Position numbers and translations under genes: made by a program
The notes under the pieces: model-generated
What the model was told of the DNA's origin: nothing
The model's input: the letters and a program-made list of their open reading frames with translations, nothing else
The model's database searches: none
Shown: positions 3,908-59,125 of the stretch, in pieces
How positions within the stretch are numbered: position 1 is the stretch's first letter
How the letters are laid out: the number at the start of each line of letters is the position of its first letter
Assembly (NCBI GenBank): GCA_004764695.1
Contig: SMSO01000014.1
Coordinates: 2,413,648-2,477,647 of the forward strand
Origin: Schizochytrium sp. TIO01
Taxonomy: Eukaryota; Protista; Bigyra: Labyrinthulomycetes
DNA: 64,000 bases
Direction: 5' to 3'

Positions 3908-4773
3908 TTCTCTGCACGAGGTTTTTCTAGAAGAGCTATACAATTGTTTCAGGTTCACTTTCTTTGCAGGCTAGCTGCATTATAGCTGCGTTATATCCGT
4001 GGCCAATGTGGTCTTCAATGTCGAATTTCCCTCCTGGATCTTACTAAACGGAAACCTAGTCGTTATAGAACATATGGAATGTGCTAAAACTCTTAATTTT
4101 CCTATACATGGACGATTTCGTCATTTTTATGTTGTGAAAGTGAAATCGAAACAAATTAAGAGGCACTACCAGAAACTCAGTCTGGGAACATCAGTCTTAT
4201 CTTCAAGAACACCAAACTTCATGAGGATTTCACGTAGGCCCAATCTAAATGTGATCCGCTTTAGATACTGAATATTGCGTTCTAAAATTTCGAGCTACGT
4301 TAAATTGAAACATCATAAGTTATTTGGTGCTAAAGGGTGCCAACACAAAATGAAAAACTGATTTTGTGTAGGCCTATTTTGATTTTCATAAATTTATATA
4401 TATATACATATAGATTTTTATTTTTATTTTTATTTTTATTTTAACCAAAAGAGAAAAGAAAGGAACAGTGAAGCTGGCTGGCTCCGTCACACTCTGTTCT
4501 TCAGTGATTCTTTCATATCTTGCTATTAATGGAAAAGGTAAACTACGACATCATGTTCAGGCCACTAGAAATAGATGGTGTCCACAACGAAAGAAGCATG
4601 GTGCTTTCCTTATTCCTACTGTGTTGCTCAAAAGTTAAATGTTAAATTGTTGCAGAATTGTAGTAAATTGAGCATCAACAATTCGACAGATCCCACAAAT
4701 GTCATTCCTGGTTTTTAAAGTTTTATAAATAAGGACAACGAGTAGGAAAAAAAGATAACATATAAAAAAATCG

Positions 4774-7674
4774 TCAAAAATACTTGAACAATGCGGGGAT
4801 GGCTGAAAAGCTCGAAAGACCAATGAGGATGAGCGCAATGCTTGAACTTACTTTGTACGTGCTTTCAAGGTTACGCATCATTTTTTGACGTCGATTACTA
4901 AAATGTTCCAAATCTGAAACATGAATGCAGATGCGACCGGAGTTTCCAGGAGGCGAAAAGTGAGGTACCCCCTGTTCTTCTAATATCTTTCGAACTTGCT
5001 CTCTCAATATAGGCCCCCGACGATTACTCCTTCGATCACCAATGCCTCTGCCAGTAACAATAATGAAAACAGGGTCAGGTTCGAGACCCAATTGCTCAGA
5101 TGAAACCTCTAAGGAAGCTCTCTCTGGTACCACATTGTCGTCGGCACAAGCTTCATTTAAAAGACGCTTATACTCAATTTGAGCATTTGATAAGGCTTCG
5201 AGATATGCCAGAAGAGCGATTTGTGTTTTTGCGCGGCTGCACCCATGCAGATCGAGCTTATTCGTGAAAATTGACTTGCCGTCAGTTCGTGGACCCAGCA
5301 CCCCGTCGGTAAGTAAATTGCGATTATCAATATACTCGCGTGGTTCGGGAACTAGGTGGGGGTGCTCGATTCGCAGAAGCTCCGCTCCATATGGACTACC
5401 TGCAAATGCTTCTGCAATGATTGATGCGGTTCCTGAGTCGGTCATAATGCCACGCGCCTTCATATCAGTGTACAACGCGTGCACTTTGTCGATGTCACCC
5501 TTTGCAACGTATGCATGAAGGAGAACATTATAAAGAAATGCATCAGGAGGTGGCCACCGCAGTTTTTCTGATGTACTACCAGTGGGTACAACAGGTCCAG
5601 ACATGAGTCGTGGCCGTTCGCTGGTGTCTTCAGTATCACTTGGGTTCTGTCCACTAGCAGCTGGACCATACAGAGTGGGATCCTCCACTAATCCTGTAGC
5701 TGAGTATCCACGGAACTTATTTAGAAGCCATTCCCACAAAGGCTGATTGTAATTGACACCAGGTTCCCATGGAACACTGTGGATCATGTTAGCAAGAATT
5801 TGCTCTGCACGCTCAAGATCATTGTTGTAGCAGTACATTTCAACTACGCTACCTGTGATAAGTCGATGTGGGACCGACTTGGAACGTTGAATTGCTTCAA
5901 GAGTTTTGTTCACGCTATCTAAATCCCCGAGTTTGCCGTAAGCGTGAATTACGCGCATCCAAATACTAGGGGAAGGTGGAATACCTAAGGATTGCATTTC
6001 TTCAAACAAGTGAAGAACATGATGCAAAAGAGACGGGTCTTGGTAGCGGTCAAATTGTCGCACGAAGAGGCGCATGCATAGCAGATACTTGAGTGAAGCG
6101 TTCTGATTGCGATCTTTTTTGGCCCTTTTAGCATCCTCGTCTCGCAAAATGTCAAGTAGCATCAGAGCGGTCGGCACAGCATCCTTATCCACAGGAGCAT
6201 CAGAACCGATCTGAGAGCACGCGGAAAGCATATTAAGAAGAACAGTTGGATACTGCGGTGGCGGTGCAGTTGACTTATGGACTGAGTTAATCATGAAGTA
6301 GATGAGCTCTTGCGCAGTGCCCCACCACCCAACCATCATAAGCCCCTCGAAAAGTATTGCCACAGGAAACTCAGATACAACACTTGGGAAAAGCCGCGCA
6401 GCAAGCTGTCCATCACCTAAAATACGAGAGTCTCGTTCTGCAGCAGGCAAAGCAGCGTGTATAGCTTTGTAAGTCTCCATAAGTACAGCAAGTTCTCGCA
6501 TGTTAAATCGCCCCCCGGCGTTCTGATCCCATTCGCTCTTGGCCTCAACACGCTTTTGCATCATCGCATACAAAGCGGATGCATTATGCGAAGCTGTGGC
6601 AAAAAGGCGGTCGCGGCTACTTGCAAGAATCTCTTCACAAGAGCTGATGAGTGCACGGCGCTCTCGCATGAAGTTTTGCTCTTTAGTAGCCCGTTGGTGA
6701 GCACGCGAGTTATTTTCGCTTAGGACCTCACTTTGGTCTTGCGCAGAAATGTTTACGTTACCCAAGCGTGACAAGAGTCCTCCAGCTGGAGCGGGGATGG
6801 GTGCTGTCTTGCGCTGTTGGGCATGCTCCTTCCAAGATCGAAGAAGCTCCTCGTTTCGAGTCTGCTCCTCATTAAAGGATCTTCTTGCAATGGACTCGGT
6901 TGTTTGTCCTCTACCAGGGGTCTGAAATTCTGTTGGTTTTGTATTATTCACCTTTATACTGTGAGGAGGTCTGTCAAAACATGAAGTGCTTTGGTCAGCG
7001 CTTTGGTTGTTCTCAACTGATGGGCCGAGCTGAGTTTTGTTACTCACTGCCACATAATCACCGAAACCATCTTGTGTCTGATTAGGTCTAGTCATACTTG
7101 CATTGGTTTCCGCATCAAGAAACTCGCTCTCCATCATCTCAAGATCGTCTACAACACCTTCAGCAAGATGGGAAGTCAAGGGTGACTTTTTGATTTTCTG
7201 CACTCGCACAGCTCGGCGCATTCGGTTTTTTGCCTTCATTTGAGACATGGCTGACTTTGATGGAGACCTTGGGCGAGGTAATGAAATGTGTTCGGGACGG
7301 ATAGCCTCATGTAACTCATGATCTTTGCTAACAACCTGACTACGGGGACGACTCTCAGACCCATCTTGCAGCTTGGTTACGTTGATGATAGTTGGATTTG
7401 TCTTTCTAACATTTTGTGCTTTAGGCTCAGCAGTATTAGTATCAGCTAGCCAGCTCCCAACAGCCGCTGTAGATCGAGTTCTGGTCCGTCTGTTGCTGGG
7501 CTGAGATCGTTTTGCATTTGCAAGCACTTTCTTGGTCTTCTCTAGTCCTTGAGAAGCTCTATCATGGTTTGTGTTTGACTTGGATGCTAACTTGCGGATT
7601 TGTACCTGTGCTGATCGAGAAAAACTAGTCTCGCTTAAAGGTATACTCGACTTGACGATCTGCCACGCTAGCAT
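4774..7674 (-). CDS. Pentatricopeptide-repeat protein with C-terminal Smr domain (PPR-SMR)
   Basis: 966-aa ORF. PPR-like repeats (LFEEMQSLGIPPSPSIWMRVIHAYGKLGD; PDAFLYNVLLHAYVAKGDIDKVHALYTDMKARGI). Smr motifs LDLHG, IIVTGRG and NSGRI. Confidence 0.85.
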   Translation of the reverse strand: MLAWQIVKSSIPLSETSFSRSAQVQIRKLASKSNTNHDRASQGLEKTKKVLANAKRSQPSNRRTRTRSTAAVGSWLADTNTAEPKAQNVRKTNPTIINVTKLQDGSESRPRSQVVSKDHELHEAIRPEHISLPRPRSPSKSAMSQMKAKNRMRRAVRVQKIKKSPLTSHLAEGVVDDLEMMESEFLDAETNASMTRPNQTQDGFGDYVAVSNKTQLGPSVENNQSADQSTSCFDRPPHSIKVNNTKPTEFQTPGRGQTTESIARRSFNEEQTRNEELLRSWKEHAQQRKTAPIPAPAGGLLSRLGNVNISAQDQSEVLSENNSRAHQRATKEQNFMRERRALISSCEEILASSRDRLFATASHNASALYAMMQKRVEAKSEWDQNAGGRFNMRELAVLMETYKAIHAALPAAERDSRILGDGQLAARLFPSVVSEFPVAILFEGLMMVGWWGTAQELIYFMINSVHKSTAPPPQYPTVLLNMLSACSQIGSDAPVDKDAVPTALMLLDILRDEDAKRAKKDRNQNASLKYLLCMRLFVRQFDRYQDPSLLHHVLHLFEEMQSLGIPPSPSIWMRVIHAYGKLGDLDSVNKTLEAIQRSKSVPHRLITGSVVEMYCYNNDLERAEQILANMIHSVPWEPGVNYNQPLWEWLLNKFRGYSATGLVEDPTLYGPAASGQNPSDTEDTSERPRLMSGPVVPTGSTSEKLRWPPPDAFLYNVLLHAYVAKGDIDKVHALYTDMKARGIMTDSGTASIIAEAFAGSPYGAELLRIEHPHLVPEPREYIDNRNLLTDGVLGPRTDGKSIFTNKLDLHGCSRAKTQIALLAYLEALSNAQIEYKRLLNEACADDNVVPERASLEVSSEQLGLEPDPVFIIVTGRGIGDRRSNRRGPILREQVRKILEEQGVPHFSPPGNSGRICIHVSDLEHFSNRRQKMMRNLESTYKVSSSIALILIGLSSFSAIPALFKYF

Positions 7675-15164: not shown

Positions 15165-16642
15165 TTAGATCCTTTTAGATTTCTTTGTGCTATTCTTCTT
15201 AGCGCTTTGGACCTTGAATTTGACTACGCTGTCTTCAATTTCGAGATTCGATGAGTGCTGCAAAAAGTTTTTCAAACTGCTGTTAAATCCAAGTTTTTTA
15301 AAGCTCTTCTTGTATCTGTCGAGAAATCGTGAACCTAGTTCAGCAATACTCATTTCCATGCCGGGACTATCCTTCACGAGCTCTTCAAACGCACTAACGA
15401 CTTCAGTTTTCGTCACCTCACCACTACTAGCCAGCTTCTCGACAGACAAAGGAGTGTTCACTGCAGTCTCAGAAGTTTTGACCTTTTTCGCTGAAATCGG
15501 GACAACTTGCTTCTCAATTGAGTCATCTTCGCGTCTTCCCCGCTTCATCTTTTGCACTAAAACGTTCGTTTCTTCAAGCGAAGCCTGATTATTACACAAA
15601 TTAGCTCAAACGTCAGTATTTTGGAACTTCGTGAAACCTCAAGACACTATCAAACTCACGGATTCCTTCTTCTCACTTAAGGCGCTCTTAGGGCGTGCTA
15701 CAAGGGTGTTGACTTGCACCAGGGTGTGAGGTGCTTGCCCATTTTCTCCCTTGTCTTCGGCATCCACCATCCCCATCTCGTTGTCTTCGTCCTCGTCCTC
15801 GTCGTCATCTTCGTCTTCGTCGTCATCTTCGTCGTCGTCGTCGTCGTCGTCGTCTTCGTCGTCATCTTCGTCTTCGTCGTCGTCTTCGTTGTCTCCGTCT
15901 TCATCTTCGTCTTCCTCATCATTATAATCTTCATCTTCATCGTCATCGTCATCATCGTCTCCTGGCGCGTCAAAAAGCTGGCTGGACATGAAGCCTTGGT
16001 AAAGACTTGGCTGCATATTTTCTTGCTCTGGGTTCATGTCTTCGTCTGCATCGAGAACGAGGCGACCAACAAGATGTATAGATGTGGACGCAGGTGCAAC
16101 GACTGAGAAAGTAAATTCAGTTTGGCTAATGGGAAGGTCAAGAGCAACATTTTCGCTGTAGTACGGAACTAAACTACAAATTGTCATCTTCGTTGTAGAT
16201 AAATCTGAGTTTTTATCCTTGTTCTTTTGAGAAAAGTCTAGTTTTAGCGTGGCTCTATCCTTTGGTGATCCGATATTTTCGCCAAGACATGCTGCAGTAA
16301 TGAGCAGCACATCACCTTCTTCTAGACGTACAGTCTGTGGGTGCCCTGGTTTGATCTCCAAACCTTTGAAAGTTATAATTATACAGAGTTAGTATCGTGA
16401 ATTTGGAGTGATTACACACAATTAAAGAGCTCTACACAAAACCAAGAGATGGTTGGGATACAGAGCTCGAGATTATTCCTCACTGCGTACTCACAGCAAG
16501 CCAAACTTGTAGTTCTTGCCGATCATAAAGATCCTGCCTGATATTCGCCGTCTTCACGGGATCTCTCGTACGTGGCCCTTTTGCAATCAAATCACTTACC
16601 AAACGGTCTGTCAGGGACAGGGGCGACAACGTGCGATGACAT
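15165..16642 (-). CDS. Nucleoplasmin-like (NPL) domain protein with acidic tract and C-terminal LOTUS/OST-HTH-like domain; 3 exons (16642-16600, 16363-15660, 15584-15165), ~388 aa
   Basis: Intron 1 (16599-16364): GTAAGT...TACTAAC branch point...AAG. Intron 2 (15659-15585): GTGAGT...CAG. Splicing restores one frame and gives MSSHVVAPVPDRPFGLEIKPG (NPL FxGxEIKPG start), ITAACLG, SIHLVG, a D/E tract, then a basic C-terminal domain. Confidence 0.82.
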
Positions 16643-46360: not shown

Positions 46361-48935
46361 TCACTTCTGTCGTTCGCCAAGATATCTCAATTCGAGTCTG
46401 GAATTCAACCTTCAGAAGTAGAGCATTTCTTTCCACGTAAACACAAAATACCTTCCTATGCACTACTATCTATCTATTGCTTACTTTCCTGTACTTATGA
46501 ACCTAATAATATGAAAATTCCTGGCACGCCAAACTTGACGAATCACTATTGGGATATCGTAATTGTTCATTCAACAGTTGCGGAGAATCTTCGTGAAGCC
46601 CCGACTTCCCGAGATGTTAGGATTCCTTGAAGCAGGAAGCATGTTGTCTACCTAACTATTGATACTGCCTACTACCAATTCCATAAAAGCAAGGCCGGGT
46701 ATAGATGGAGCGATGGTATTTAGCCGAGGAATAGAGAAGGTACCTCATGCGTTCACAGATTAAGTCATCTCTGGAACAAGTTTATCTATGGTAGGAGCCT
46801 TTTGAAAAGGCGTCCGCCCCTACTATGAGATGCACACTTTAGGCCTATCTGCTTAAAAAAATATTTAAACAGTTACTAATCAATTGTTTATGCTGGCAGT
46901 CTTAGCGAGCAAGAATTTTGAAATCAGGCCGAACATCCCCAAAGACGAGCGCTTATCTCAGGGGTAACACACACCTCGTTTATTTTCTCTCAAACAGTGT
47001 ACCATTAATTTAAAATGCTGTCTTTAAGGTTCATTTTGTAGTTTATTGTTTATTGTTTCCTACTGCTCGCTGACTTTGTCGAGGTCCACTGAGGTACTTT
47101 GGCTCATTTCAATGCGTTGGCTTACTGCTATAATCTGCATCGGTAGCCAGTTAACACTATTTTGGATGTCGGTTCTCATCTCTTAAAGTCCCCATCTTAA
47201 CGTCCAGGATTAGAAACTTTAGCTTTTGTTCTTGATCAGATATTTTCTCCCTTCACATATTTCGCTATATTTTTTTCGGGCTAGTCTTCTGACCCTCCGA
47301 ATATCACTCTAGCAAAGTTTCTCTGTCTTTATCTTCTCTCTTTGCATAGTTTTCTTTACCTTCCACGGAGCAGCATTGCCTGGGCCACCGCCATGTACAC
47401 TGTTTTTTTGTTTTTATATTGAGCGTTGCAAAATCATTGATTTATGTGCACAGTTCCAGCATTTCTTTTAGTACCTTAACCAAATTTATTTCGTACAGTG
47501 AGACAAATACTCTCAAGTGACGTCAGCTCCTTTTGCTTGTTTTGAAGAATCACATCGTCATTTGATCTCGCTAAATTTTGGAAAGCCGTTGACTGCCCAT
47601 GGGTTCTTTTTGCACAAATTGGTGCTCTGTGGATGCCGAACATGAGTAATATGCTACTGGCTGTATTTCTTCTCATATGTTTAAGGGTTGATTTTCCCAA
47701 GGCACTGCTTTTGACAGGCAACGCAATTAGAGATATGCTATTAATCGCTGCGTTTCTCATTTGAGCGAGAGCGTAGTTACTGTGATCTGATTGGTTACGA
47801 TCCTCCAAACCTGTGGTAAAGAACTCTTTAAATTGCCATGTTTGCTACGCCTCCTAGTCTAAGAAATTTAAAATATCCTGTTGCGTTCAATTCTGCAGCA
47901 TCTTGACATCCTCTGTGTCCTCTTTTTAATGACTATTTCGCAACAAGTCACCATGGGTCTATCCTAGCAGAATGAGATAGCGTTTTGAGGTGGAATTAGA
48001 TCGGCAGCACTATATCGGGGTTGCATTCCACGCCATGTGAATTCACTAATGCGGTGGAATTTACGTGTCAATCTGCTCAGGATAAGTCTCAGGGTGAGAT
48101 ACAGTTCCGCAGCAGCAATCTTAGTGCTATGGCTCATATTCGAGGTTGTTTCATTACGCTAACAAGCACGGGAAACCAGCCCGTGGTTGCATTGTTGTTC
48201 GAGGTAATTACGGCAAGCCAGAGTAGTCGAGTTTTGACATTTCAATATCACTATTATTATATTCTTTCAACCTATCCCTGAAACAGCTTCTTGTAGTCTT
48301 GAGTTAATATCTAATACTCACCATAAATTACATTCTTGTTGTTCATGTAACGGGCTGGGTTTTCAGTTTTTTTGGTTATACATTCAACATTGAAAAGAGT
48401 GGCATAACAGTGTAATTCTTTGTTTAAATCCTCAGTACTCAAACTTAGATATCTTAAGCGGACAATATGTTGAATTGTTTGAAGAGTTGCCGTCTGATAA
48501 GAGTAGAATCAAGAACACAACCTGCTCATGACCCCCCCACCCCACAGTCTCACTCATCAGAGTCTATTTCCCTAACTTAACTCGAACCGTATTCTCATTA
48601 AACTCTGAATTGTGATTGAGCCTTTTGGCTTGGATTTCTACATTTCTTCTCAAGTCAAAAGGCTGTGTGACCATCCTCTGGCTAGTAAGAGTGGAAACTC
48701 CCATTAAATGAATTGGTGCCATTTTGGAAACTAGAATAATTTATTAGAGCAAATCGAAATAAGTCACACCCAGTAGTCAGAGTCAGAAGCGGCTTCTAGC
48801 AACCTTTTTATACGTAAAAACTTAAGTTAAAGCATTCATGCCATCCTGTAAAGCTACTCTCATGAGTTAAAGATAACTCCTATCTTGAGAAGAAACTCGA
48901 GGCAAAATAATTACTCGTTACCTCCCGATAAGATC

Positions 48936-49100
48936 CTATTGAATTACTCTCGAATTACAATCTGCAAAACTTGCATTTCCTATGGTGACAGAGTGCGGGG
49001 CTAAGCCCCAATCTCGAGTTTAAAAAAAAACTAACCCATGACTCAAAAACAATTCTCAAACCACGTCTTTAAATCGGTAGAACGAAAGGGCGCCTCTGGC
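48936..49100 (-). ncRNA. Candidate Fanzor omega-RNA (copy A): scaffold plus flank-derived guide
   Basis: Lies directly 3' of the RuvC-III codons. Shares hairpins GGGGC-TTA-GCCCC and TGCAA-GTT-TTGCA with the other copies. Expression and boundaries are inferred. Confidence 0.45.
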
Positions 49101-49400
49101 GGCATGGACATCACGATCGACTACAGGTTTGCATTTTTGGGGGGGCATTTGAAAACCTTGGATGTTCTGAGCTTGTCGTGGATTGTACATATCCTCTGCA
49201 TGGTTTCGAAGTATCCCCAAATGCAACCACGTAGGCGGTCGTGATATCCACGCCGGCAGAGGCATCCTTTTCCGCTGTCGATTCAAAGACGCAATTTTAG
49301 AATTGTTTTTGAGTCGCGGGTTAGTTTTTTTAAAAACTCAAATTGGGCCTTAGCCCCTCACTCTGTCACCATATGGAAAATGCAAGTTTAGCAAATTGTA
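48956..49400. mobile_element. Non-autonomous fold-back (MITE-like) element made of two inverted Fanzor 3' ends
   Basis: 48956-49145 is an imperfect inverted repeat of 49215-49400 (~80% identity by eye), with TA at both outer ends. Left arm plus loop (minus strand) reads DTSKPC..IHDKLRTSKVFKCP..KCKPVVDRDVHAARGAL with frameshifts. Right arm (plus strand) reads KCNHVGGRDIHAGRGIL. Homologous to 57101-57355. Confidence 0.85.
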
Positions 49401-49420
49401 TTGGTTAAATTCTAAATGAC
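49260..49420 (+). ncRNA. Candidate Fanzor omega-RNA (copy B): scaffold plus flank-derived guide
   Basis: Directly 3' of RDIHAGRGIL. Hairpins GGGC-CTTA-GCCC and TGC-AAGTTTA-GCA. Expression and boundaries are inferred. Confidence 0.45.
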
Positions 49421-52096: not shown

Positions 52097-52493
52097 CTGT
52101 GGCGGGGTAGGCGCAGATGTTTAAACCTCAAATCTATCTTCCTCGCTAGTCTCTGTCTCTCTCTCTTCTTGACCAGCTACTAACTTGATTCAACGTTACG
52201 GAATGACTACATCAACTGCAGCTAGCCTTGCTCGCTCTAACTGTGGTAATCTAAAAGTCAATCCTCAATGTATTGTGAGGCCCAAGCGCTTGAGGTTTGC
52301 TTGACTATTCAAAACACGTAAAGAGATAGAGCCTTGAGAGTGCCAATACTTCTGCGACACTAGGTGCCTATGAGTTACTACTAGGTAGTGAATATTAGGT
52401 TAGACTGAAGGCCGTTCGACGAATCCAAGTCTTTAAAGCACGGAACGCGTAGACAGCAAGGGTGACTAAGAGGTGAATCACAGAATCCTTGCG

Positions 52494-54968
52494 ATGACAG
52501 AGAATGATAAAATTTCTGCCCTTGCAGCCCTCCGCTCTGGAGCACCAGAAGACAACCAGACTCCCTCTCTTGGTAAACATCATGAGGGTAGTTTTCGAGT
52601 TTACATGAGACACAAGCGGGCCAAGCTTGGGAACCAATATGCACAGCTTCGTGACGAAAGGGTACCCCAAATATTTGCAGGAGAGGTATTTTGGATCAAT
52701 GGTGTTACTGCGCTTGAGCCCTGCGGTAAATCTCAGAAGGACATGAGAGATACTATACTTCGGCATGGAGGCCTTTACGTTGATGTTGATACTCCAGATG
52801 TAACGATTGTTATATGTCGTAACCTAAATCACGAAAAAGCTCGTAAGGAAAAGACAATCAAGCGTGTTCACCGGAAACGATTCCTACTCCCATCCTGGGT
52901 AACAGACTGTGTGAATGCTGGGCAGAAACTCCCAGAACACAATTATGTAATTGAAGAGTTGCGACCTGAAGGCAACCATCGTATGTTTGCACGCCTTGGC
53001 AAATCGCATTCTTCTTCTGCCGTATCTGTGGTTGTTCGCGCTCGGTACTGTAATATCTTGCAATTGGCTGCGGATGCATCAAATGATGAAGCTGTTGCTA
53101 TCAAAGGGATCGTTCAATGGGTTGGTGAGAAGGCACCAAAACCAATTTACGTTGGAATGCCTGTTTTTCAGGCGTCTGGATGGAATTGTATAGTTCGGCA
53201 CCTTGACTCTTCCGTTCTGCTTCGATTCGCGGATAAGTGGCTCACCAGCCTACGTGCAATGGCTGTGCGTAAGCAAGTCCGCTCTCTTAACCTTGAAGAG
53301 GCTCTGTGTGTTGTTCCTACTTCACTCGAGATGCAAGCCCTGGCCGCAATCATTGAGCAAAAACTTGCACCTGGTAGTCAAGTAGCTGTAGACTGTATTG
53401 AAGGTACCCTTCCATATGGAAAACATAGCAGTGAGCAGCTGCAGTCAATGCAAAAGCCAGACGTATTGTTTTCTGTACCTTCCTCTTCATTCACGATACC
53501 TCAAGAAGGAAATGGAAAGTCCTCATCAAATGAGGTTCAGAGTATCTCAAACCAGCCATCTAATATGTGCGCAACGCGAACCTTCGGATGTCAGTTTGCG
53601 TCAGCTAAAGATATGGTTTTTGCAGTGGAGTCATTGCTTCACAAACTTGCAGGTGATATACAGTTTGTGACTTTGAAAGACAAGTTTTTTTCATGTACCC
53701 TTTGGTATCGTATTCCAGCAAGTGGTGCGTCTAGCATCAGAGGTGATACCTTTGAAACTAATTTTGAAAGAGAGAGCATTCAAATTATCGCAAATGCACT
53801 CGTGTCTGGGCTCCCCTATGCTTCTATTCTTAGTTTGACTCTTAAGTGCAGTGATGTAGATCGCCTTGCTGTTCCAAGAAATATCCCTGTCAATCTGACA
53901 ACACTTAACCAGACCATACCCATTGAAATCCATGATGAAGAATCATCATTGAATTCGCAAAAGCAAACTGAATTTCGGGTGTCCTCTGAATTGAACAAAA
54001 GAACCGCAATTGGACAAATTGATCCGGTAATACTTGCCTCATTGCCAATGGATTTGCAGAATGAAGTTTTGCAAGCTCCTGAAGGGTACATGTCTCCAAA
54101 AACACATTCAAAACAAACAGAAGGCTCTTCTAGTATAGTAGATTTATTAACCCCAGAAAAGCGTCATGGCGTTTCGGCGAATCGCTGTGCTTCACAACAA
54201 TCCAGCGGAGGTAGTCAATCTATTGATATGAGCGTCTGGAACTGCTTGCCAGCGGATGTGCAGGATGATCTTCGTCGCGAAGCAAATGCACATGCGGTTC
54301 AAAGTGCTTTTAATACTGCAAATCGCACCCAGGACGCTATAAGAACAAAAAATGGTATAAAGCGAGAACGTCGCCACCAGAAATCCATGCTGGACTTTGC
54401 TCAAGTTGTGAGTAAGAAGCGTAGGAAAGATGTGCACGCTAAGGCTGTTCGTCATGCAAGTCGCCAATTCAAAGCTAGTATGCGTCTTTTTACAGATTCA
54501 ACTACTGATCAAGATAACAAAGCAAAGTCACAACAGCCCCCGGCGCTAAGTCCTGTAAGTGGGAGGGGCGATAGAAACATAGTCGAAGGTGAAGATTTAT
54601 ATGATGGTTATCTTGAAAAGGATAGTGAATCCGTAGTTGGCTTATATGAGAGCTGGTCTGACATTCGCCCGGTAATTCTTGATTTTGTTGACAATATTTG
54701 TAGCGAGTTAATCAAGTACAAAGAAGAAAAGGAATGGCCCCCATATGCACAGGAGCTTCTTGCGTCGGCATCAAACTCTTTGTCATCATATCTTTGTGGA
54801 CTCACAAAGGCTGAACAACTGTTCAAGGTACAACAGGTACTCCGTTTAGTGCAATTTCAGCTTCAAAAATGTTTTCCAAAGCTTTTGGATAGCTTATGGC
54901 CTTCTATTTTGGAGAATACGCAACAGGCTTGCATCGTGACATATGGTACACAAATGAGATTAGTTTAA
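52494..54968 (+). CDS. REV1-like protein: BRCT, degenerate Y-family polymerase core, two UBMs, REV1-C-like end
   Basis: FRVYMRHKRAKLGNQY..IFAGEVFWING..ILRHGG..PSWVTDCVNAGQKLP (REV1-type BRCT). UBM-like QIDPVILASLPMDLQNEV and SIDMSVWNCLPADVQDDL. First ATG at 52494. Confidence 0.75.
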   Translation: MTENDKISALAALRSGAPEDNQTPSLGKHHEGSFRVYMRHKRAKLGNQYAQLRDERVPQIFAGEVFWINGVTALEPCGKSQKDMRDTILRHGGLYVDVDTPDVTIVICRNLNHEKARKEKTIKRVHRKRFLLPSWVTDCVNAGQKLPEHNYVIEELRPEGNHRMFARLGKSHSSSAVSVVVRARYCNILQLAADASNDEAVAIKGIVQWVGEKAPKPIYVGMPVFQASGWNCIVRHLDSSVLLRFADKWLTSLRAMAVRKQVRSLNLEEALCVVPTSLEMQALAAIIEQKLAPGSQVAVDCIEGTLPYGKHSSEQLQSMQKPDVLFSVPSSSFTIPQEGNGKSSSNEVQSISNQPSNMCATRTFGCQFASAKDMVFAVESLLHKLAGDIQFVTLKDKFFSCTLWYRIPASGASSIRGDTFETNFERESIQIIANALVSGLPYASILSLTLKCSDVDRLAVPRNIPVNLTTLNQTIPIEIHDEESSLNSQKQTEFRVSSELNKRTAIGQIDPVILASLPMDLQNEVLQAPEGYMSPKTHSKQTEGSSSIVDLLTPEKRHGVSANRCASQQSSGGSQSIDMSVWNCLPADVQDDLRREANAHAVQSAFNTANRTQDAIRTKNGIKRERRHQKSMLDFAQVVSKKRRKDVHAKAVRHASRQFKASMRLFTDSTTDQDNKAKSQQPPALSPVSGRGDRNIVEGEDLYDGYLEKDSESVVGLYESWSDIRPVILDFVDNICSELIKYKEEKEWPPYAQELLASASNSLSSYLCGLTKAEQLFKVQQVLRLVQFQLQKCFPKLLDSLWPSILENTQQACIVTYGTQMRLV

Positions 54969-55274: not shown

Positions 55275-56858
55275 TCAACCTCTTCCGGAGCTAATAGCGA
55301 GTTGTTCTCGAAAATCATCATCATTACTGCGTGAAATAAGGTCTAGTACCCGCCAGTATTGTAGAGTCCCACCACCTTGAGGTGATTCCATGAGGCTGTC
55401 ATCCGAACATGACAAAAAACCCCATGGGTCATGTAAACTCCAATCAAAATCTGAAGCAGGAGCTTGGTGCCCAGCATGTTTAAAAAATGGCATGGGCTCA
55501 TTCTCTGAGAGATCTTCGTTCAACCCAAGGTCCCAAATTAGAAAATCTTTCTGCTCATCTGTGCTCGCAAAGTAATGACGGTGGTGTGGCGACCATCGAA
55601 CATTGAGAACTGCAGACTCGTGGCCTTGAAAGCGCCGGACGACTCCAGGTGTCTTTCCAGGATCTCCAGTGTTAACTGTTGAAGAAGAGCTAAATTTCCT
55701 GGTGTCAAGCAAACATATATGCTTGTCGGAACTTCCAGTCAGAATATAGTATTCGTCATGAGCATTCCATGCGCAACAGTTGACATCACTCGTATGGATG
55801 CGTAGCAGATGAGTTGGGTTAGTGCCTTTACGGGCATCCCAAAATGCAGCCAATTTGTCGTCTCCCACAGAAATAAAGTTGTTACCTTCACTATGCGGAT
55901 TGAAAGCACACCCTTCAATCGGCCCGCTATGACCCACATAAATACTTCGAGCATCTGTTTTGCCATGGTGCATAAGGGCCGACTCTGCATCTCTGAGGTT
56001 CCATAAGCATAAGTCGCCATCAGATCCGCCACTTAAAATATGGTCTGATGTTGCCGAAAAATCAAGAGCATATTCTGCTTTTTTAGAATGGCCAGCAAGG
56101 GTGAGGTCAGGGATACTGGCATGTTGCGGAGTAAGCTTTTGAGACTTTGACGCAGCCACTACAGCATCTGAAACTTGGTGATCGTCACCAGATTCCTTTG
56201 CTGCTTCCGCAGCAGCAGCGGCCGAGGCTGCAATTGCACTTCCCCCATTCTTACCAGATCGATCTGGTTGGTTTTCAACATCCCAAATGAATACATAAGG
56301 CGAATCACTGTGTGTAGCAATAATGCCAGGTCGCAGAACTGACGGGCGCACACGATTTACTTCGCCAGGGTGGATAATACGTTTCTCAATAGTAATACGA
56401 GACGATTGGTTTGTTTCAGCGAATCGAGCAAGGTATTTGCGACGAGATGTGTTATTGAGGTTGATATCAACATTTCCGACCAATAGCAAGCTTGGCTGAC
56501 CCGAACTCCACAAATTAGTGCCAGGTGAATACTTTGCATCGGTTCGGCTTGAAAAATAGATCTGAGTATGTGCCCACGGATTCTCTTCATCACGTACACC
56601 AGGCCGAACATCAAAGGCGCACGTGAGGCTTGCCCAGTTTAGACTGTGGTGAAGGATGGTGTCGTAGAGTAGTGGAATATTCCGTTTCCATGCAACAAAG
56701 TAGTCTCTGGGGGAGGTAACATCCGGGCGAGTAAGGCCATAGTCTTTCAAAACAGGATCAATTGATCCGGTTCGTGGACGACGCGTCTCCTTCGTACTAT
56801 TTCCAGCCCTCTCCGTTGCTTGGCGGCTGCGTTTGCCCCCAGAGCCATCACCTCCCAT
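55275..56858 (-). CDS. WD40 histone-binding protein, RBBP4/MSI family (MSI4/FVE-like)
   Basis: WKRNIPLLYD..HSLNWASLTC, IIHPGEVNRVR, THSDSPYVFIWDVENQP, several WD repeats, FKHAGH, GGGTLQYWR. Confidence 0.9.
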   Translation of the reverse strand: MGGDGSGGKRSRQATERAGNSTKETRRPRTGSIDPVLKDYGLTRPDVTSPRDYFVAWKRNIPLLYDTILHHSLNWASLTCAFDVRPGVRDEENPWAHTQIYFSSRTDAKYSPGTNLWSSGQPSLLLVGNVDINLNNTSRRKYLARFAETNQSSRITIEKRIIHPGEVNRVRPSVLRPGIIATHSDSPYVFIWDVENQPDRSGKNGGSAIAASAAAAAEAAKESGDDHQVSDAVVAASKSQKLTPQHASIPDLTLAGHSKKAEYALDFSATSDHILSGGSDGDLCLWNLRDAESALMHHGKTDARSIYVGHSGPIEGCAFNPHSEGNNFISVGDDKLAAFWDARKGTNPTHLLRIHTSDVNCCAWNAHDEYYILTGSSDKHICLLDTRKFSSSSTVNTGDPGKTPGVVRRFQGHESAVLNVRWSPHHRHYFASTDEQKDFLIWDLGLNEDLSENEPMPFFKHAGHQAPASDFDWSLHDPWGFLSCSDDSLMESPQGGGTLQYWRVLDLISRSNDDDFREQLAISSGRG

Positions 56859-57079
56859 CCTTTACCAAAAGCTTTTAAAAGCCGTGCAGCACACGTGTTG
56901 GTGTCTTTGACAGGTTAATTATATCATGCAAAGTCAATCAGGAACAACAAACGTTTCGCCCCTGTCATTGCCTGATCCTTGGCGTTCAAGTTATTTCATG
57001 ATCTTCGCAAGAAGATTATTATTTTATTCTGCTGCTTTTGCCCGGTAGCACCTAGCAATCCATAATAAATGGTGGGGCT

Positions 57080-57240
57080 ATTTACTTAGAGATTCACCTA
57101 TAAAATTTGCAAAACATGCATTCCCTATGCTGACAATGGGGAGCTAAAGCCCAATCGTGGGTTAAAAACAAACCCGCAACTCAACGAAAATTCTTAAATC
57201 ATGTCTTTGGATAGATAGGAAGCACAGAAGGATGCCTCCA
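57080..57240 (-). ncRNA. Candidate Fanzor omega-RNA (copy C) / transposon right end
   Basis: Directly 3' of the Fanzor relic and homologous to both fold-back arms. Hairpins GGGTT..AACCC, GGGC-TTTA-GCTC and TGCA-TGTTT-TGCA. Confidence 0.5.
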
Positions 57241-57890
57241 GCGGCGTGAATATTACGATCGGCTACGCATTTGTATTTTTGGGGGGTCATTTGCAAACCC
57301 TGGATGTTCCCAGCTTGTCGTGGATGATACCACATTCATTGCGTGGTTTGGAAGTGGCAAATAACCAGTTTACACCACTGGCAGGGAGAAGCTCGGCTTT
57401 GTAAATGAGCGTTTGTCGGAAGCGAACAAACGGCACATCATTCGAGCTGTCTTGATTTTGATCCGTCTTGTAAACCTATTGAGGTTTCGGATTTAGGCAA
57501 AACATCGTAGTTTTCACAGAGCCAAGCGCAAGCTTGCGGTGAATCTCGGTAGTTCAGCAGGGCGCGCAAGCCCAGCCTTTAATGATATTGTAGACGGCGG
57601 AGGCGTCTGGATGGGCACGCTGGAGGCCACCCATATGGTGCTTCAAGTTCGCTTTTTATTTGACGGAGGACACTCCTGGTGTAGATAATGCTCGCGCGGC
57701 TGCCGGAACAAACCGCTGTTATAGGTGTGCTCAGCGTCGTCACTTGAATATATGCGTTTGTCTCCGGGGAAGTACCCAAAGGGCTCTTGCTAAAATGCCA
57801 AACTTCTGGTTGGAGTACTTTGTTGGCTTGTATTTTAGCTTTGCTTCGCTTGTAGCGTTCGGAGCTTGGTGGTTCCTTGGCCATTCCATT
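57222..57890 (-). pseudogene. Degraded Fanzor (TnpB-like RNA-guided RuvC nuclease, Fanzor2/IS607-type motifs)
   Basis: Co-linear motifs across frameshifts: EIHRKLA (57547-57527), WLCENYDVLPKSETS (57524-57480), KTARMMCR (57453-57430), RFRQTLIYKAEL (57424-57389), WCKLVIC, TSKPRNECGIIHDKLGTSRVCK (57355-57290), KCVADRNIHAAGGILL (to ~57225). The 5' boundary is uncertain. Confidence 0.88.
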
Positions 57891-59125
57891 TTCTTACCTA
57901 ATCTCCGCTTTAAAAACAAAACAAAACAAAACACTAAAATAAAGACCTTACTAATATAATCTATCATTCATTATATGGAATAGTTCCTGCCATTTGGAGG
58001 TTATATAAGTTTTAACGTTTCGTAGGTGGTTTCGATTTAAGCCAAAGATTACCTTCGTGCAAGCTCAGGGGTGAACCAGATCCAGTGAAAAAGTGCAGAA
58101 AGCAGAACAACTTGCCCGAAAGAGGTCTCAAGTGGTCATTAATCGCGATGGAAAGAGAAAGAAACAACAAGGAATCTAAATGCTAAATAATGGTGTTCAA
58201 ATGAAATTAAAAAAGCAATGAAGGTTTAAAATCTCCTAATTTAACGAACAATGATTTATACTTGATCATGTGAGCGCGATTTCGTGACAAGTTTAACGAA
58301 TATTTCAATCGGTCTTGATACTCGGTGAGAAGCTGGTATGTATGTGTTGCGTTAGGCTTCGTTTCGTAATTATATCACCTTGCAAGAAATCGTACGTTTT
58401 TAGTGTGGTGCTAGTTCTGTTCTCTTCATGAGTTAATCATAGCTATCATGTTTCGGATGGCTATGATTTATGAGTTCGCTTTATACGCAAAGTACTTTGT
58501 TCGAAGCTAGCAGCAAAAGTGATTAAACATATAAACAATATCTGCTCTGAAGGCAACTTTTGCCTTCCTCTTGACAATCAAGGATTGCATTTTCACAAAT
58601 ATCTCTGCAATTGCAATTAACAGCCAATGGAGTCTAATATTAAGGACTGGATGGTTTATTTGTGAGATTTTGATTGCATAGCCTGAGTATTCGGTGACCC
58701 CACGTAGTACTACAACTGATAGAACTCACAGCATGATTAGCGATAGTAACAATATCGGGTACTCGGATTGGGGTAAATAATGGATATAAGTATTATTACT
58801 AGCAATGTTTTTAGAATGAAGAAAAAATACTCTTCTCTAAGTAAAATATTTGTCTGTTCCGAATTCTTAATTCTTACTTGTACTACCTGCCTACCTACTA
58901 CCTGCCTACCTAAAATGACCTAGTAATATTTCATGCTTATATTCGGGTGTTGGGGACTAGTTATGTAGAACAGAACAGAGTAAGAAAGAACAATAAAATA
59001 GAATGAAAGACTCAGAAGCCCTATTTAGGAAAGAAGACGGGCATGGCAGATAACGTACGGAGACAGACTATATAGCGACAAAGGAGAGGCAGATAAGCAA
59101 CAGGCCCAGAGACGCAGGCCTTGGA

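Follow-up and report, generated by a model that had tools for sequence, protein, structure and literature searches.

The 64,000-nucleotide stretch of the Schizochytrium sp. TIO01 genome analysed here (C13:2413648-2477647, hereafter the window) carries on its minus strand, upstream of an MSI4/RBBP4-like gene, what is very probably the remains of a transposon of the IS607 type, shortened from a parent that encoded a serine recombinase (TnpA) and a Fanzor2 nuclease. The genome searched throughout comprises 64 Mb in 37 contigs. The parts of this relic, each with the evidence that places it, are as follows, where L031 is an intact element elsewhere in the same genome and L052-L064 are long sister copies of the relic.

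57083/57085-58030, minus strand: the whole relic, probably a ~0.9-kb (0.95 kb) non-autonomous deletion derivative of an IS607-Fanzor2 element (alignment to L031, sister copies, conservation profile)
58011-58030, minus strand: left end, ACCACCTACGAAACGTTAAAA, the family left end being GTACCTAnGAAAACGTTAGAA (anchored left-end comparison; flanks diverge upstream)
57907-57945, no strand assigned: (AAAAC)n microsatellite insertion in the 5' non-coding part, found in the relic only, ~26 extra nt relative to sister copies (multiple alignment)
57581-57886, minus strand: tnpA remnant (IS607 serine recombinase), approximately residues 1-118, with stops and frameshifts (tblastn)
57551-57587, minus strand: family-wide deletion junction, tnpA codon ~135 fused to Fanzor codon ~536 (breakpoints also in L052-L064)
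57197-57550, minus strand: remnant of the Fanzor2 C-terminus, approximately residues 536-662 (RuvC-II region, zinc ribbon, RuvC-III), with at least 5 frame changes (tblastn, our own profile hidden Markov model (HMM), frame map)
Between 57357 and 57356, minus strand: relic-only 11-bp deletion that took the alternative RuvC-II Glu codon (multiple alignment)
57194-57196, minus strand: original Fanzor stop codon (frame map)
57083-57193, minus strand: 3' non-coding right end with three inherited hairpins, a candidate former guide-RNA scaffold, ending CTCTAAG(TA) (right-end alignment)
57156-57178, 57141-57152 and 57108-57120, minus strand: the right-end hairpins (right-end alignment)

Translation of 56900-58000 in three frames placed all seven motif blocks noted in a preliminary description of this DNA on the minus strand, in the order it gave, scattered over the three frames.

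57479-57553, minus strand: HRKLA
57441-57578, minus strand: AWLCENYDVLPKSETS
57373-57492, minus strand: KTARMM
57290-57475, minus strand: RFRQTLIYKA...TSKPRNECGIIHDKLGTSRVCK
57339-57437, minus strand: WCKLVIC
57165-57335, minus strand: KCVADRNIHAAGGILL
57197-57262, minus strand: YLSKDMI*

Similarity searches located both genes at this place. With tblastn, the intact Fanzor of the same genome matched 57197-57550 (E=7e-9) and the intact TnpA matched 57581-57880 (38% identity, E=1e-11), where the remnant retains the helix-turn-helix (HTH) part KYKPTKY.QKFGI and LQRAHPDASAVY; with blastn, the DNA of the intact element matched 57085-57550 at E=1e-40 and 57775-57910 at E=2e-31. Chance similarity as the source of the motif blocks is ruled out by these values. 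Our own HMM, trained on the last 155 residues of 117 homologues found in other organisms and run against all 2668 six-frame stop-to-stop pieces of the window, filled its top eight places with five pieces of the relic (best E=5e-5, ~55 bits summed) and three pieces at ~49.1-49.4 kb. Pfam searches with eight stop-to-stop pieces of the relic taken singly returned nothing at E<=10, and the relic is thus invisible to open reading frame tracks and to piecewise profile searches.

Gap-tolerant alignment of the relic to L031 4084-6256 revealed homology from end to end, interrupted by a single gap of ~1250 bp (L031 4517-5766) and by more than 20 small indels. The RuvC-I region was lost within that gap, stops interrupt the remaining ~127 Fanzor codons, which are divided among three frames, and the relic itself fails as a Fanzor in one open frame with the RuvC-I DPG, the alternative Glu, the zinc ribbon and RuvC-III; it encodes nothing. 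At the 11-bp deletion the relic reads TTTGC|CAC and its sisters ...TTTGC CGAGAGGATTG CAC... (C R E D C T S K), and the deletion is missing from 12 of the 13 sister copies, the remaining sister having a larger gap there.

These results bear directly on the preliminary description, which had proposed a relic of the C-terminal RuvC/zinc-ribbon architecture of TnpB/Fanzor at 57101-57890, an inactive copy in which a short deletion between WCKLVIC and TSK had taken the alternative Glu. The motif relic was recovered by frame translation, tblastn, blastn and our own HMM; its frames are broken, its RuvC-I is deleted and its alternative Glu codon is gone, removed with the R-E-D-C codons by the relic-only 11-bp deletion just described. 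Significant similarity to TnpB/Fanzor, the lack of which in the stitched peptide was to have overturned the proposal, is seen in both the tblastn and the HMM built on external homologues, and the observation is thereby confirmed. The place was right, but the true extent reaches ~16 bp further at the 3' side and ~140 bp further at the 5' side, and, with the Fanzor C-terminus correctly recognised, the tnpA remnant and both transposon ends had been missed. Its three related ends within ~8 kb also held up, homology placing two more decayed Fanzor 3' ends at window 48935-49416, back to back and diverging from ~49214.

Intact elements of the corresponding type occur in the same genome. Profile PF07282 (Cas12f1-like TNB), which represents the TnpB zinc ribbon, had 52 matches in its six-frame translation, 17 of them in open frames of 615-682 codons, and the 30 Resolvase matches lay at PF07282 loci; the open Fanzor frames end in ...CPNPKCNHVADRDVHAARGILLRYLSKDMI, the C-terminus that the relic shows as KCVADRNIHAAGGILL / YLSKDMI. 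Full copies compared with their flanks have ~2.2 kb in common and diverge sharply beyond it (L031 4056/4061 to 6259/6261), with no terminal inverted repeats (TIRs) at the ends of intact elements and no target-site duplications (TSDs) visible in the flanks. In L031, tnpA (4170-4868) encodes a 232-residue protein with a Pfam Resolvase match at 5e-20, and in the Fanzor frame (4162-6147) the HTH_OrfB_IS605, OrfB_IS605 and TNB zinc-ribbon domains were recognised. Against the NCBIfam IS607 transposase equivalog NF033518 the intact TnpA scores above cut-off over the whole profile (144.9 bits, cut-off 110), while the intact Fanzor scores above cut-off with PF07282 (2.4e-13) and PF12323 (2e-9), below cut-off with PF01385 (9e-4), and slightly below the cut-off of 100 bits with NCBIfam guided_TnpB (E=7e-27, 94.7 bits). 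Six aligned full copies are 95-99% identical, with the Fanzor frame open in all and a tnpA frame of 237-243 codons in five.

The catalytic residues of the intact nuclease follow the rearranged pattern, with DPG at residue 416 (RuvC-I), a Glu 145 residues later that stands six residues before the first CxxC (CQESYTSKTCNEC; E-x6-CNEC), and an Asp 4 residues after the last Cys (the RuvC-III Asp), and the alignment pattern suggests that the Pro of LLPKFET occupies the Glu position of canonical TnpB. The second zinc-ribbon Cys pair is CPNPKC (C-x4-C and not CxxC; L031:6070-6090, residues ~589-594). A published regular expression that separates Fanzors from ordinary TnpBs asks for DPG, a Glu six residues before CxxC and an Asp 4-8 residues after the second Cys pair (PMC10711439); in its strict form it fails on the intact Fanzor because of that second Cys pair and on that point only. 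Among solved structures the best match is the mimivirus TnpB-like L79 (Fanzor2; 9b0l) at 2e-18; Cas12m/Cas12f/TnpB-type chains come next, PDB sequence matches at E<=0.01 include no chain named as Fanzor1, and one homologue carries the name of PBCV-1 A625R. Judged by these matches, the intact nuclease would be placed nearer to Fanzor2/TnpB than to Fanzor1. Its closest public protein is an MMETSP transcript at 90% identity, so that a near relative is transcribed; the next, at ~47%, come from metagenomes and the dinoflagellate Durusdinium. The Pro at the canonical Glu place with an alternative Glu, the Fanzor2-like affiliation (here joined to an IS607 serine recombinase) and a multi-copy family with possible intact members, all put forward in the preliminary description, agree with what the intact copies show, and its proposed genome-wide check for full-length frames with a linked recombinase is answered by the 17 open Fanzor frames and the Resolvase matches at their loci.

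Some young copies have a stop inside tnpA (C5:1374200, C13:2775152, C13:3979978, C31:5077397, C32:1870798, C36:1883650 and L034); L034 and four of the six other places retain an open Fanzor frame of 661-665 codons, with 632 codons at C13:2775152 and only 286 at C13:3979978. An old inverted fragment of the family (L036:3421-4015, 70-74% identical) adjoins one young autonomous copy, and a 405-codon open frame of retrotransposon-like sequence (copia-type polymerase; L034:8250-9464) lies ~2 kb from another.

The intact elements also revealed that tnpA is nested within the Fanzor frame, which is open across the whole tnpA gene and always in the +1 frame (L031:4162-4868), AKLWSCTATDLRESQ being the +1 reading of the TnpA motif GQVVVMHRDRLARIA. 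Synonymous-codon shuffles of tnpA give an expectation of ~3.3 stops in the Fanzor frame, with a probability of none of ~0.007. The same nesting, in the same frame, recurs in ~6 independent metagenomic relatives whose TnpA proteins are 36-43% identical (nested loci: L031, L072, L074, L075/L076, L077/L078, L081 and L082/L083), and in four of these relatives the part of tnpA tested has no stop (P(none) 0.0008-0.015), while two have a single stop close to the start of tnpA; shuffles across lineages expect 3-5. Homologues in databases that are 618-642 residues long can be aligned over an N-terminal extension, and 7 of the 9 ATGs downstream of the tnpA ATG and within tnpA are in the Fanzor frame. 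The nesting may give both proteins from one transcript, or a long Fanzor isoform; the key Fanzor papers make no mention of a tnpA/Fanzor overlap. No single kind of gene adjoins the metagenomic relatives, whose neighbours include Rpb1-like, RibD and AAA ATPase genes.

Searching the genome with the DNA of the relic returned 241 first-look candidates and 47 listed matches, the relic included, most of which were whole, contiguous stretches of 830-870 bp at 68-75% identity, with more than 25 other places matched over query positions 76-902; the number of short copies is a lower bound, as only the best 40 of the 241 candidates were scored. Twenty of these matches were fetched, 13 of them long (L052-L064) and seven shorter. 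All 13 long copies, which lie on 7 contigs, have the breakpoints of the relic, joining element position ~516-524 to ~1708-1718, and four of the seven shorter copies (L065-L068) have a nested further deletion (~164 to 439). Because the same junction is found in the relic and in 13 independently placed copies, the 1.25-kb deletion is older than the insertion at the window site, and by the same comparison no full-length Fanzor gene appears ever to have resided there.

In a multiple alignment the relic shares both terminal motifs and the architecture of its sister copies, and it thus has the deletion junction and the two termini by which the derivative family is recognised. Pairwise identity among the long copies is narrow and star-like, at 71.5-78.4% (mean 75%, Kimura two-parameter distance 0.31) as compared with 95-99% among the autonomous copies. 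Column-majority conservation is nearly flat along the element (~0.80-0.88) and drops to background beyond both ends, and these alignments point to the relic as one member of an old, amplified family of 0.85-0.95-kb non-autonomous derivatives. The family has a mild conservation peak of 0.93 at 57869-57898, in the block around the tnpA start, and that block (57861-57906) is a very high-copy word in the DNA run. Summed contig depth in the DNA run over 57805-57991 reaches ~17,500 against a baseline of ~380, a ~45-fold excess that suggests, as a rough and independent hint at copy number, ~45 near-identical words.

Alignment of 23 right ends found the three named hairpins in most of them, with 87.0% of cells paired as against 86.8% after shuffling. 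No covariation beyond shuffles was detected in these 23 right ends, where 213 of 500 shuffles reached the observed pairing and every measure equalled its control, and the RNAalifold consensus was weak (-4.45 kcal/mol) and formed a different, long-range helix. Since the hairpin measures equal those of shuffles, no structural selection is demonstrable; the hairpins appear to be inherited, with nothing in the alignment to indicate selection on them after insertion. The trans-acting guide loci that the preliminary description envisaged find no support beyond these inherited hairpins.

The MSI4/RBBP4-like gene (55275-56858, minus strand; nearest named relative in Hondaea fermentalgiana, 66% identity) is on the same strand as the relic, with its ATG at 56858, 227 bp downstream of it. 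Its protein is 100% identical only to sequences in Logan assemblies, and the Hondaea relative marks the genome as that of a thraustochytrid (Labyrinthulomycetes). Contigs of two probable RNA runs (X17 and X19), judged RNA-like from their cover on genes and the lack of it over intergenic 58000-59100, extend from this gene upstream through 57085 to ~57820-57827. Contigs of four differently labelled runs, DNA and probable RNA, contain the relic, which fits an insertion that is old and fixed. These contigs suggest, as a lead and not a finding, that the relic may lie in the leader or promoter region of the MSI4-like gene. An 831-codon open frame (window 52473-54968) lies beside the same gene. Elsewhere in the window, a long run of a serine-coding trinucleotide repeat (15736-15990) was a source of spurious tblastn matches.

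Taking these observations together, we hold with high confidence that window 57083-58030 on the minus strand is a dead copy of an internally deleted, non-autonomous IS607-type derivative whose parent, of ~2.2 kb, encoded TnpA and Fanzor2. One ancestral element lost ~1.25 kb, from the middle of tnpA to near the end of the Fanzor gene, and the short form, which retains both ends, the opening ~135 codons of tnpA and the closing ~127 of Fanzor, then multiplied to dozens of places. The amplification of copies without a complete tnpA suggests that TnpA from full-length elements moved them in trans, presumably as in the IS607 mechanism (PMC6188088, PMC10711439), in which a serine recombinase cuts and pastes by way of a circular double-stranded intermediate, with neither inverted ends nor target duplications involved. 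The right-end guide-RNA scaffold would lie within the 3' ~490 bp that was retained, and short copies could have homed with Fanzor made elsewhere. The window copy has since drifted neutrally, now standing ~24% from its sisters and ~20-33% from young autonomous elements, and may be passively transcribed in the upstream region of the MSI4/RBBP4-like gene. Several points weigh against this account. Trans-mobilisation and the use of Fanzor by short copies are steps that we infer; the copy number of the short family is a lower bound; the assignment of the relic appears to depend on transitive homology and our own HMM, Pfam being blind to its single pieces; the crossover dinucleotide and target motif are not cleanly readable from the flanks, where the left end starts GT and the right end reads ...CTAAG(T/A)G; and the RNA evidence for the relic consists of unstranded contigs that break at repeats, in runs whose RNA label is a guess.

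The wording of the preliminary description implied instead that a Fanzor gene had decayed in place, that is, that a full-length autonomous IS607-Fanzor2 copy inserted at the window site, lost its middle and degenerated there. Such a history would leave both ends and parts of both genes, as the relic has, and deletions do arise in situ; but the junction of ~516-524 with ~1708-1718 is common to 13 independently located copies on 7 contigs, and we consider decay in place very unlikely because it needs recurrent identical deletions. The big deletion predates the insertion, and what landed was an already shortened, non-autonomous element. We give hardly any credence to the stretch being debris of an integrated giant-virus genome: although Fanzor2/IS607 elements are enriched in giant viruses (PMC10530073) and the metagenomic relative beside the Rpb1-like gene could be read that way, the copies are single, scattered over at least 10 contigs among ordinary host genes (here REV1-like, MSI4-like and EF-hand), and end at sharp boundaries of 2.2-kb or 0.9-kb elements. 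A later layer compatible with the deletion-derivative origin is that the relic was co-opted as promoter, transcription start or 5' untranslated region of the MSI4/RBBP4-like gene, to which we assign a modest chance, well short of even. The RNA-like contigs that run from the gene into the relic and leave 58000-59100 uncovered favour it, as does the position of the most conserved block of the family (0.93 against ~0.84) just upstream of where they end. These contigs, however, show neither starts nor strand and are interrupted at the repeat word 57861-57906, cover in run X13 extends to the intergenic region too, the conservation peak is mild, and compact genomes keep insertions mainly in intergenic DNA anyway.

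A role as a guide-RNA donor in trans, whereby the scaffold of the relic is still transcribed and loads the Fanzor of intact copies for cleavage of sequence matching its 3' flank, also strikes us as highly improbable. The three scaffold hairpins are largely foldable in the relic, the region seems to be transcribed in the sense of the neighbouring gene, and intact Fanzor genes are present in the genome; against this, the lack of covariation beyond shuffles fits neutral decay of inherited hairpins, the scaffold of the relic is ~30% diverged from that of young elements, its first hairpin has a C-A mismatch, and there is no evidence of RNA processing. We likewise find it improbable, if less extreme, that the 0.9-kb derivatives are guide-only parasites selected to keep the scaffold, borrowing TnpA to move and Fanzor to home, with the scaffold of the relic, in the leader of the MSI4-like gene, perhaps still loadable by Fanzor from young elements. 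Linked to this reading at the level of the family, the overprinting of tnpA in an extended Fanzor frame may be a way for a two-gene bacterial IS to have both proteins produced from one transcript.

The relic itself is ordinary neutral debris, and its value is as a pointer to the family. This lineage has long been a host of IS607-Fanzor2 elements, as seen from both an old amplification of short non-autonomous copies and a more recent group, at least 17 elements whose Fanzor frame is open and most of which also have an open tnpA. These younger elements are an obvious place from which to obtain a compact eukaryotic nuclease, predicted to be RNA-guided, together with its own transposase, and the family is a new host record; it offers a culturable protist system for testing serine-recombinase trans-mobilisation and homing. 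Among the by-products, the conserved nesting of tnpA in the Fanzor frame stands out as more unusual. That protists and giant viruses carry Fanzor2 within IS607-type elements is already well known. In the literature searched we found no report that joins thraustochytrids with Fanzor, TnpB or IS607, and no description of amplified non-autonomous eukaryotic IS607/Fanzor2 derivatives, neither of which is proof of novelty; the supplement of PMC10711439 contains no thraustochytrid taxa.

Among known systems, the Fanzor2 elements of Acanthamoeba and giant viruses (ACa-1/2, ISvMimi_1/2; ApmFNuc / mimivirus L79, 9b0l) likewise pair a serine-recombinase TnpA with a TnpB-like nuclease (PMC3627910, PMC10711439, PMC10530073), with an N-terminal HTH, DPG, alternative RuvC-II Glu and zinc ribbon and without TIRs or TSDs. 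Those described here differ in their thraustochytrid host, in a second zinc pair of C-x4-C, in a tnpA that is wholly within the Fanzor frame, and in dozens of deletion-derivative copies, of which the one in the window is dead. Bacterial IS607 elements (IS607, ISXfa1) share a TnpA that matches the full IS607 profile, the order tnpA then tnpB, and a right-end RNA region 3' of tnpB (PMC6188088, PMC10711439), whereas here the nuclease, at 62 bits, is far below the 350-bit IS607_TnpB cut-off, the ends show no evident GG crossover dinucleotide, and the genome is eukaryotic. The short copies resemble miniature inverted-repeat transposable element (MITE)-like elements and the PATEs of IS200/IS605 in being short, internally deleted and non-coding, with both ends kept and amplification far beyond the parents, but their source is an IS607 element with a serine recombinase and neither TIRs nor TSDs, and of its 3' end they retain ~490 bp, in which the guide-RNA scaffold is presumed to lie. 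Fanzor1 (such as SpuFz1 of Spizellomyces punctatus) is also a eukaryotic TnpB homologue with DPG and a rearranged Glu (PMC10711439); it is more diverged and rides transposons with TIRs and TSDs, whereas the partner here is an IS607 TnpA. Read from the sequences, TnpA and the catalytic signature together would correspond to the Fanzor2 / IS607-type arrangement of PMC3627910.

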